A stretch of 56,219 bases of DNA, counting the filler, from Platydemus manokwari (lineage: Eukaryota): the NCBI GenBank assembly GCA_037951405.1. It is 5 parts of 5 records of this genome, joined end to end, with 100 filler letters (N's around TTAATTAATTAA, not from the genome) between each part and the next. Parts side by side here need not be neighbours in the genome. Positions count along the whole stretch, not along the records: positions 1 to 8,975 come from JBBMOY011320427.1; 4 more parts are not named here. One strand, 5' to 3'. The notes under the pieces are model-generated. The model searched no databases. It saw only the letters and a program-made list of their open reading frames with translations, and was not told the DNA's origin. The position numbers and the translations under genes were made by a program. Every line of letters begins with the position of its first letter. Within the stretch, counting starts at the first letter, position 1. This document shows positions 3,936-7,990 of the stretch, piece after piece.

Positions 3936-6900
3936 TTAACAGATTCCCTGTTGCATAGGCGGCATGATGTGTTGCAACGCGACACTAGATCTAAAAACCA
4001 AAATCAAATCAAATGCGCTTTTCCATTAATGCAAGCAGAACAAATTATTAAATTAAATAGTTTTAAAAATTAATTAATCATTTCAAATAAATAACAAAAA
4101 TAAAGCTCTACCTAATAAATGAATTATGATTGTTGAATTGACTCATAATTAGTCTAGGTTTGCCTGGCTCAATGTTATAATATGACTGCACTAGGGCGTG
4201 AATTTTCACTGAAATTGAAAACATATGTAATGGTTACAATATACATATACATATAATATAACGATAAAAGTAATTAAATGTTAAATTCGTGCAAACTACT
4301 TTCTTTGTATTAAAAAAGATAGCAAAATTTAATCAAAACTGACATTGCCCTCAATGAATAATCAACGGTGTATTAAAATAGACAGAAAGATATATACACA
4401 CAACAAAATGGTTAGTATTAATAGAATTGAAGAAATAATTCTCTACCAAAATTCTAACACGCTATTTTATATCAAAGCAAAAATAATTTCAAATGAATCA
4501 TCAATGATTCAGAAAAGAACATAGACACTTCATTAAATATTCGAATAAAGATGAATAAAGTCTGATGAATAAGAATGAAATATGTAATTTCGAAAAAAAC
4601 CACGCTTTTTTATTGAGATTTGTCAATGAAACTGACACAGTCTTCCTTCTTTGTTTAGGCTTTAAGGCTGTTTTTTTCCAAAATCAAACATTTCATTATA
4701 CCAGTAGATAACAAAGCATATTATGTCCAAATAAATATTGTATCCGCTCATCTTTATTGAGTTAAATATCTTAAAGAGATATCAGGAAAAAACCCACATA
4801 TTAAACAAATTATCAGAAATAACATTAATAGAACAATGTAAATGATAATTATTGGGATGAAATATTTTTCATTTCAAATTTAGAAAACTATTTTTAGAAA
4901 TTCGTTTAAAAAACCGGTCTGTTGATATATCCTCCAAATAGCTTATATTAAATGATCGACAAAAAAGAATATTTAAATAGAAAATTAAGAATAATTCAAA
5001 TTAATAGTGAAAACATTTTTACTTCTGGCTTCCTCTAATGTTGACATTTTATCTGAAATGTCCGCACAGAACAATCGTCCATTGAAAATTGGTTCAAAAA
5101 ACGTTGGATTGTTAAGAAATTTTTGGTTGATCTGACTTTGGCAATTTATCATTGTTTTGTCGGAAATAAACTGCATATTATATAAATTGCTGTTTTCACT
5201 TATATTATTGCTCGCTGGATGGGAACAACAAGCGCAAAGAAATCCATGAAAAAGTTGACGACCTTGAGATACAAATGGACTTTGCAAAGCCGTCTCGGCA
5301 CTGAGTCTTTCATTCTAAAATAAAACAAAAATCACAGAATGACAAACAATACCACGTTCAATTTGAGTACATAAAAAATTGTTGATATGAACAAAACCTG
5401 TTAATGATTCGTTAGTTGTTGTTATTATTATTAATAGCTTTTCAAAAAATCAATTATTTATATAATAACAATACTTGTCCAAAAACGAAAATTATTAGAA
5501 AAAGTTAAAGTGGTCATTTAAAAAGTAAATATATTAAACTACTTCAAAATAGACACAAAATATTATAAAGATAATCAAAAATTCAAATAAATTTGTTAGA
5601 AAATTTCTAAAAAAAAATCAAAAAATCAATGAGAAAAATATCAAATATTTGTAAATGATGTAAAAATATTCATCACAACCAATTAAAAATAAAAGTTTTA
5701 TCTTGACAATTTTCAAAATACATCAGCCATAAATTTGTGCCAAAGATATTTCAATGTTCAGATTAACTATGTCCGAAATTCTCATTCTATGAAATAATTC
5801 GCACAAATTTCAGACATAAGTGAATAATTTTATTTTGTTTAAAATCATAAATAAATTTTCAGTGTAAAAATTTCGGAACATGGAATAATTTTTTGTTGTT
5901 GAACGTGTAAATATGACCAAAAATATCAACGATGTGGACACATCGATTTTGTCATGTGATATTATATATATATATATATATATAATCATTATTACTAAAA
6001 TTATTATTTTGTCGGTATTGAAATAATGAAATATTGACCCATAAAAAATCCGATTGAAAATTTCAACATATAATCATCATATATGATAGAAATTTACACC
6101 AGAATTAATCGACCATTAAGAACATTTGACAAAGAAAAAACTAAACATCACAAATGTTGCACACACAACATTTCATTATCTATAAATGATAATAATTAAT
6201 CAGCACTTTTAAAATCAATATAAATATAAAATGGACATTTATTGTAATTATATTTTATTATAATTATATTAATATCATATATTTTGCCAAAATTAATTTG
6301 AATCACCATTTGAAATCAAAATTAATTAAGAGAAGATTCATTTCTTGATATATTATCAATGGAGATAATCAAAAATTAATTTATTGAAGAAATAAATCCT
6401 GTACATAGTTATTATTAATATCATATTGTTTATCAACAAATTATAAATGCTGACATCATCATGTGTTTTGATGTCCATGATATAAATAAAGTAATGATAT
6501 TGAATATTGGTCGATGAAGTTATGCGAATTATTATGTGTAAATATAAATATAATTTATATATATATAATTAATAAATCCAATTAAAATGCCAATTGATAT
6601 AACACAAGATACAATCAATACATACATTTTTTTCAATTACAAGTCAAACATGAATCTCAACAATCAAAAATGGAATTTAATCATTACATCACTTCCATTA
6701 TAGTTAACATGTCAGCATCAACAACAACATCATCATATATGTATATATTTAATAATTATATAATGATGGACTACACAACAACAATAATTACCGGATTAAA
6801 TTTAAGCAAGTTGATCAGCAAATAAAGAGCATCCATATCGATCTCTGAAGTTAGAGATTCAAAAAATTTCACATTTTGTCGCCTTGGTAATTGTGTACAC

Positions 6901-7400
6901 ATAAACTGTCGAGATTGCTTAGACCATAAATGAGCACCAATTTTTTTCATTTCTTCATCGTTTTGGCTGACAATTTTTGGACATCCAACAATATCGAGAA
7001 TCAAATTCAATTGTTCGAAAGTATTGTTACTCTATATTAATGATAAGTGATTATGGTGAAATTTTTACAATCACATTCCACAGCACATACCTGAAACAAA
7101 ATTCCATTAGTGAACAATTCTACCAAAATGCAACCAGCACTCCAAAGATCAATGGATGAAGAATATTCCGATACACCGAGTATCAATTCCGGTGCTCTAT
7201 AATATTGAGTAACCACGTGAGGAGTCATGCTTTCAAAAGACTTTTCCCTTGCTAAACCGAAATCACAAATCTATGCCCGAAACCATTAACGTTTCATATA
7301 ATATAACAAATCACCTTTAACTGACATTTCGAGTTAACTAAAAGATTTCCAGGTTTCAAATCACGATGAATGATATTAGCGGAATGCAAATATTTTAAAC
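3936..7400 (-). CDS. NLK: Nemo-like kinase, 3' portion (six exons: 7400-7315, 7270-7091, 7031-6792, 5314-5023, 4208-4112, 3990-3936)
   Basis: All introns are GT-AG and phase-compatible. Translation: [28 protein letters not shown]|[33 protein letters not shown]|..QLNLILD..LLKFNP|[30 protein letters not shown]..|..KIHALV..SFI|[22 protein letters not shown], the GRxxFHxxxCxCC segment and the SS..MPP tail are NLK/nemo/lit-1 hallmarks. Confidence 0.9.
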
Positions 7401-7529
7401 CTATATAATTATGTGATTAATTCCATGACAAAGGCAAAACTGTCAATTGTATTATAAGAAACATTTAAAGATATAAACAGTATATAATGTATTTAAAAAA
7501 TGTTTCGCATTACCTATTAATTACATTCA

Positions 7530-7990
7530 AATCGGATATAGTTGATATGCCATCTATATTATCGTTGAATCATCAATGTTATATGTGCTTATTCTATGAA
7601 CATTATGCAACACGAGCTCTGCGTTATAGAGAATTACATAATATTATGACTGATAAAACTTCACTGAAATCTAGAAAACACAAAAAACATGACCCCAAAT
7701 TAATGATTGTTCAGCTATAAGAGTGTTGTTTACTAAAACCTAGATTTTAGAAGTTATTTTTAGAAAATTATAACTATGTCATTAATCGAAACATGTTATT
7801 TCTATATCATTTCATTACTAATTGAATTTTGTTTGATTATATCTTAATAATTCAACTATGTTCATACAATAATTTAATTGAAATTAAAAAAACAATCTAA
7901 ACAAATATTTGAAATTCAAGAATAAAAGAAAGATTTTAATTTTATAACACTTCCGAAACGGGCTCTACCAATATTTCTAATGACTTGATA
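7530..7990 (-). pseudogene. Decayed kinase N-lobe sequence, collinear with and upstream of the intact NLK exons
   Basis: In order: YQVIRNIGRARFGSVIK (Gly-loop-like, 7990-7940), ISIKLL (VAIK-like, about 7884-7867), EITCFD**HSYNFLK (alphaC/HxN-like) and YYVILYNAELVLHNVHRI..DDSTII*MAYQLY (ELM..LH..YQ-like, 7645-7530). Contains stops and frameshifts and no usable splice path. Confidence 0.5.

Follow-up and report, generated by a model that had tools for sequence, protein, structure and literature searches.

Does the kinase locus of Platydemus manokwari described here have a split fate, with its C-lobe preserved and its N-lobe decayed, or is it an ordinary gene of which only one half is in view? 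Nemo-like kinase (NLK, known as nemo in Drosophila and LIT-1 in C. elegans) belongs to the CMGC kinases and is an atypical MAPK. The initial annotation of the locus described intact NLK C-lobe exons behind a decayed N-lobe and offered two explanations: either the working 5' exons lie further upstream or elsewhere, or a C-lobe devoid of its N-lobe is maintained as a non-catalytic protein. Our analysis indicates that the split fate is a product of assembly fragmentation and chance similarity. The gene, which we call NLK-B, is quite probably an NLK paralog of the ordinary kind, complete and under constraint, that was broken by the assembly, and we infer the join of its two parts from intron phase, common intron positions and one-to-one copy number.

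The window, i.e. the whole stretch of DNA that was analysed (56,219 nt), contains the locus at positions 1–8975, which are the entire 8,975-bp contig C1320427 (G000). The assembly comprises 911 Mb in 1,989,153 contigs with a GC content of about 26%. As it is so fragmented, a gene whose introns span a few kb will probably be interrupted by the end of a contig. The canonical NLK gene of this genome, NLK-A, is also split (C1968045 and C1174511), and the splitting of genes is routine in this assembly.

The six exons proposed in the initial annotation hold. They are on the minus strand and correspond to NLK-B exons 5 (7315–7400), 6 (7091–7270), 7 (6792–7031), 8 (5023–5314), 9 (4112–4208) and 10 (3936–3990), the last coding exon. 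Their lengths of 86 + 180 + 240 + 292 + 97 + 55 nt add up to 950 nt in a single stop-free frame, which extends from GLKYLHS and HRD to a TAA stop codon at 3938–3936, and for every one of the six an AG acceptor and a GT donor can be read from the sequence. Exon 5 begins at a phase-1 acceptor (tatag|GT TTA) and needs one base from the exon before it. The Pfam Pkinase profile matches exons 5 and 6 with E-values of 4.7e-10 and 4.3e-16, respectively, and the HRDxKxxN catalytic loop, DFG and APE motifs were read directly in these two exons, with exon 6 (ICDFGLAR...ILFQ) carrying DFG, the activation loop and APE. Exons 5–8, including exon 7 (...LLKFNP), were aligned by tblastn with four NLKs. The alignment covers the NLK-specific cysteine motif, as the FHGFLCACC of exon 8 aligns to the cysteine cluster (HxCMCxCC) of three NLKs with E-values of 4e-6 to 6e-4.

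In a comparison of exon 6 with 1.84 billion cluster representatives, the best full-length matches were NLKs with 63–68% identity. As regards the activation segment, in which NLKs depart from the T-x-Y and RWYRAPE of ERK, p38 and JNK, exon 6 has the ten-residue stretch that was looked for, but TPH in place of TQE. A database search with the exon-6 ORF found nothing close, and the P0003 cluster has a single member. The PDB search returned no NLK chain, the nearest chains being JNK, MAPK6 and CDK11. A Pfam search of ten other stop-free segments of the window found no further kinase or MUN exons, and an Rfam search gave no match.

The region upstream of exon 5 was where the initial annotation had seen remnants of the Gly-loop, VAIK, alphaC and ELM..YQ elements. 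We compared this region with 100 dinucleotide shuffles in tblastn searches with seven N-lobe queries, which comprised vertebrate and Macrostomum sequences, a JGI NLK and the N-lobe exons of NLK-B itself. The best score of 7401–8000 was 16.9 bits versus 16.2 ± 1.6 bits for the shuffles, and the score of the real minus-strand sequence was equalled or surpassed by 26 of these 100. The longer segment 7401–8704 was similarly shuffle-like, and every N-lobe match across 7401–8975 had an E-value above 1. There is no significant kinase match for 7530–7990, which is one of the outcomes that the initial annotation had named as refuting it, and decay of an N-lobe in cis finds no support, its supposed remnants being indistinguishable from shuffled sequence. 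The resemblance of IGRARFGSVIKL to a Gly-loop, like that of the VMEL string to its counterpart, is due to chance in AT-rich DNA. The segment 7401–8479 (minus strand) is unique in the genome and has no coding signal, and its kinase similarity is not above chance. We assign it to the 3' part of NLK-B intron 4, so that the sequence directly upstream of exon 5 would be an intron and not a dead N-lobe. A pseudogene with a decayed N-lobe was rejected, as there are no homologous remnants beyond those of the shuffles and dN/dS is far from 1 (see below).

When NLK N-lobes from vertebrates and invertebrates were searched against the entire assembly, as called for by the initial annotation, only two N-lobes of the NLK type were found. 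One is that of NLK-A on C1968045, and the other is an intact N-lobe on contig C1292940 (locus L036). The remaining matches were ERK-, p38-, CDK- or MAPK15-like or lay on small, GC-richer, foreign-looking contigs. C1292940 is 3,074 bp long and carries four minus-strand exons at 1999–1575, 1531–1402, 1350–1292 and 1071–965, all of them stop-free, which we number 1–4 of NLK-B. They total 721 nt without a stop, counted from an ATG. Exon 4 ends in ...FYQILR with a phase-1 donor (CGT G|gtgagt). The encoded protein begins with an N-terminal extension of about 120 residues, for which a database search detected no relatives beyond a sibling-species sample, and continues with KPLGNGAFGVVW, QVNDPRTNEKMAMKQITNVFSNVMSAQRTFRELTML and ...YILCQFMDFDLHTIISSKKSIAKFHVKLLFYQILR. 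The catalytic elements of the N-lobe (GNGAFG, the AMK lysine and the RELTML glutamate) are present. The proposal that working 5' exons exist elsewhere is thus favoured by the data, as intact and phase-matched ones lie on C1292940. Exon replacement, trans-splicing and a split fate were not borne out, and the cause is most likely the fragmentation of the assembly.

Quite probably, the two contigs carry the halves of one intact NLK-B gene, linked both physically and in the transcript. We joined their exons locally for frame and length checks only. The phase-1 donor of exon 4 and the phase-1 acceptor of exon 5 (ag|GT TTA AAA TAT TTG CAT) produce GGT, the Gly of the conserved RGLKYLHS, and the composite of 721 + 950 = 1,671 nt equals 557 codons, or a 556-residue protein. 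Across the exon 4/exon 5 junction the spliced product would read ...TTCTATCAAATACTTCGTG|GTTTAAAATATTTGCAT... The composite agrees with NLK-A on C1968045 in the position and phase of all seven introns; in NLK-A the same junction has the form ...ILR G|gt, a 48-nt intron, and ag|GT GTC AAA TAT TTG CAC. Because the acceptor is in phase 1 and the intron position is shared with NLK-A, the window exon needs just the type of donor that C1292940 offers. Furthermore, each half of NLK-B is single-copy in the genome, as exon 6 and exon 8 are when taken individually, and NLK-A provides the sole further match of the NLK type. N-lobes and C-lobes, two of each, therefore pair one to one.

The ends of C1292940 and the window contig have no suffix/prefix or BLAST overlap, and no other contig of the assembly overlaps the end of C1292940. 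A profile search, run with an alignment that had the exons as separate rows, was dominated by NLK orthologs, and a full-length NLK-B protein is absent among the 120 matches listed. In the arrangement that we propose, the window would contain exons 5–10, from the catalytic loop to the C-terminus, with exons 1–4 on C1292940, and the short-read assembly would have broken inside the long, repeat-containing intron 4. Ordinary N-lobe exons would then be linked in cis upstream of exon 5, which is the other outcome that the initial annotation had considered fatal to its reading. Splicing of the two halves would give a 556-residue CMGC kinase with every catalytic motif. As the two contigs between them supply every catalytic element, NLK-B is presumably an active NLK-type Ser/Thr kinase that binds ATP.

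One feature of the contig speaks against the join. As assembled, it has an exon of another gene on the stretch from exon 5 to its end. This exon (8705–8836, minus strand, flanked by AG and GT splice sites) is of the CAPS/unc-31 type and encodes part of a MUN domain (Pfam PF06292, positions 37–77, E-value 3.6e-10). We place it outside the kinase gene; if the contig is correct, it would lie within NLK-B intron 4. Next to it, at 8480–8676, is a 197-bp interspersed repeat that resembles a MITE and whose terminal inverted repeats, of 25 nt, are 88% complementary. The repeat is short, non-coding and of high copy number, as is expected of a MITE, with at least 664 candidate copies found in a first look at the genome, and the listed copies are 77–91% identical over their length.

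The following CAPS exon (FPQEVNIG...) is absent from the window and is found on the 1,309-bp contig C1822101; the exon order VLNQ|FPQE is that of CADPS sequences. C1822101 opens with 77 bases identical to the window at 8582–8506, beyond which the two sequences diverge. This 77-mer (8506–8582) occurs in no other contig, and the other copies of the repeat family are at most 95% identical over the same stretch. An exact 77-base overlap at the start of a contig is the trace of a branch point in a de Bruijn assembler with k = 77. As C1822101 starts with the exact 77-mer, the fork in the assembly graph lies within the MITE. From it, one path would continue the CAPS gene, whereas the other, taken by the window contig, would lead to NLK-B. 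Hence, we infer that the window contig is probably chimeric at about 8505–8676, and the CAPS exon is most likely part of a separate locus, attached here via the MITE.

A collinear contig would require a different arrangement. NLK-B would still be complete, with its exons 1–4 beyond 8975, but it would be interleaved with the CAPS gene on one strand, so that the CAPS exon is in NLK-B intron 4 and NLK-B exons 5–10 are inside a CAPS intron. C1822101 would then contain a near-identical MITE copy from a paralogous CAPS locus. This is the path that the assembler produced, and the second incoming contig that is expected at the fork was not found, as the sequence at 8560–8710 (the left part of the MITE and the CAPS exon) has no second near-identical copy. 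Moreover, the CAPS exon is present in the genome in three versions and its successor in about four, i.e. paralogous loci do exist. However, the MITE copy that opens C1822101 matches the window more closely over the 77 bases than any other, the exon that comes after it is the very successor of ...VLNQ in the CAPS order, and same-strand interleaved genes are rare. We consider such interleaving unlikely and the chimeric contig the better explanation.

The selection regime was examined with the Logan sample SRR33002330, which evidently comes from a sibling species and, as a single sample, contains genomic contigs for both halves of NLK-B. In exons 1–3, 4 of the 203 residues differ from the sibling contig L065, with a pS of 0.39 and a dN/dS of about 0.015. 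In exons 5–7, 4 of the 168 residues differ from the sibling contig L035, with a pN of 0.019 and a pS of 0.79, at which synonymous sites are saturated. The dN/dS test that the initial annotation had suggested for the 3' exons, run here on exons 5–7, shows constraint and not neutrality. The window exons are conserved NLK-type kinase exons under strong purifying selection, and neither half of NLK-B is decaying. The halves differ both in synonymous divergence (pS of 0.39 versus 0.79) and in the GC3 of the relative (0.35 versus 0.59). One small locus would not be expected to show such a mismatch, which counts against the join. The two contigs of the relative may come from different genomes in the sample or may have different compositional contexts.

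These values also bear on the possibility that the window exons are a partial, C-lobe-only duplicate that is kept as a non-catalytic protein, the N-lobe of C1292940 being derived from a full copy that was left unassembled. The unequal synonymous divergence is in agreement with it, and so are the purifying selection on exons 5–7 and the absence of a physical link between the halves. However, both halves are single-copy, the phase-1 acceptor of exon 5 requires exactly the donor of C1292940, and no decayed N-lobe is present. Furthermore, the window has no in-frame ATG ahead of exon 5. Reading through upstream of its acceptor encounters a stop after 5 codons and no ATG, and the first in-frame Met of the window exons is in exon 6, after both HRD and DFG. 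An N-lobe-less ORF was rejected for the lack of an upstream ATG, and the idea of a maintained C-lobe protein is left unsupported. We consider a duplicate of this kind very unlikely.

Least probable of all is a MITE-mediated ectopic recombination in one haplotype that placed the 5' exons of CAPS before NLK-B exons 5–10 as an out-of-frame fusion allele: the fork inside the MITE, with its one incoming and two outgoing paths, speaks for it, but forks of this sort are common artefacts in a 2-million-contig assembly, and the phase-0 CAPS donor followed by the phase-1 NLK acceptor gives GTT TAA, an immediate stop, which also rules out a CAPS-NLK fusion protein. That the contig is non-chimeric in one way or the other, i.e. 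represents either CAPS/NLK-B interleaving or a rearranged haplotype, is improbable, if marginally less so than interleaving by itself.

With the two halves joined as proposed, NLK-B can be compared with known kinases. It resembles NLKs in its H-x-x-x-C-x-CC C-terminal motif and PxxIxxQ..FxSFI-like tail, in the N-lobe signature NVFxNxxSxxRxFRELxML on the partner contig, and in exons 5–6, which are 57–82% identical to those of NLKs. It differs from them not only in the TPH loop, but also in the highly divergent region from ILFQ to KFNP and C-terminal insert (21–29% identity), and in its N-terminal extension, which has no relatives outside the sibling sample. NLK-A, by contrast, is canonical and far more conserved, and NLK-B is a second copy in the same genome. 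Their identical intron positions and phases at the seven compared sites indicate a duplication at the DNA level, whereas their amino-acid identity is only about 50–57% in exons 2 and 6, and intron 4 is 48 nt long in NLK-A versus more than 2 kb in NLK-B. Within the window alone, NLK-B looks like a kinase pseudogene, processed or unitary, with a decayed 5' part, as no N-lobe precedes its C-lobe exons. It differs from one in lacking remnants, in having kept its introns, in being under strong purifying selection and in having an intact N-lobe on another contig. A retrogene was also rejected, as the introns are retained.

NLK-B would thus be a second NLK paralog, fast-evolving yet strongly constrained, with a TPH loop and a private N-terminal extension, which gives it a modest interest with regard to Wnt/NLK signalling in this lineage. 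The main lesson of the locus is one of caution, as half a gene beside an AT-rich intron can mimic a split-fate kinase when an assembly runs to about 2 million contigs.

Two further observations were made in the course of these searches. Short introns, of about 45–60 nt, occur, and the best partial protein matches for NLK-B are to the NLK of Macrostomum. Small, GC-richer contigs (C1822426, C1506840, C1261502, C255135 and C1004299) contain NLK fragments that are 81–100% identical to vertebrate NLK; these contigs look foreign, and some of them may be vertebrate or human.

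The first 77 bases of C1822101, the contig bearing the CAPS exon that follows the one in the window, are exactly identical to window positions 8506-8582, so that the start of one contig coincides with an internal stretch of the other. Such an exact overlap suggests that a k=77 assembly graph forks at this place and that the window contig is possibly chimeric.

A MITE-like element of 197 bp with 25-nt terminal inverted repeats (ATAATTACCGCATTTTCCGGACTAT) is located upstream of the kinase exons at window 8480-8676. Genome-wide, it has at least 664 candidate copies, and the window copy is about 18 nt short near one end compared to the fuller ones. 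The CAPS/unc-31-type MUN-domain exon lies at the contig end (8705-8836, minus strand) and is considered together with contigs C1822101, C242311 and C1610653. Three versions of this exon are present in the genome (amino acid identities of 100%, 83% and 62%), as are about four versions of the exon that comes after it. Hence, either CAPS is multi-copy, or the assembly contains divergent haplotypes or foreign DNA.

Additional NLK exon fragments were found on five tiny contigs (C1822426, C1506840, C1261502, C255135 and C1004299), and their protein identity to vertebrate NLK is 75-100%. The two contigs for which the GC content was measured, C1822426 and C1506840, are GC-richer (37-44%). All five probably represent foreign DNA within this assembly, with a vertebrate or human origin possible for some. 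The canonical paralog, NLK-A, is also divided between two contigs, C1968045 and C1174511; the region of its introns 2-3 extends over about 3.8 kb, whereas intron 4 measures just 48 nt.

Compared to the sibling-species relative (Logan SRR33002330), the two halves of NLK-B show unequal synonymous divergence, with a pS of 0.79 (L035, exons 5-7) and 0.39 (L065, exons 1-3), and the relative's GC3 is likewise unequal at 0.59 and 0.35, respectively. The third-position changes from the window to the relative are mostly T>C and A>G.

Two stop-free stretches on the minus strand downstream of the kinase gene, of 95 codons (852-1136) and 93 codons (70-348), have no match in Pfam and could represent 3' UTR or chance ORFs. 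Intron 7 of NLK-B contains a short (TA)n-type microsatellite (about 5960-5985), and this simple repeat recurs in an intron on C1292940, at positions 785-806 of the N-lobe locus L036.
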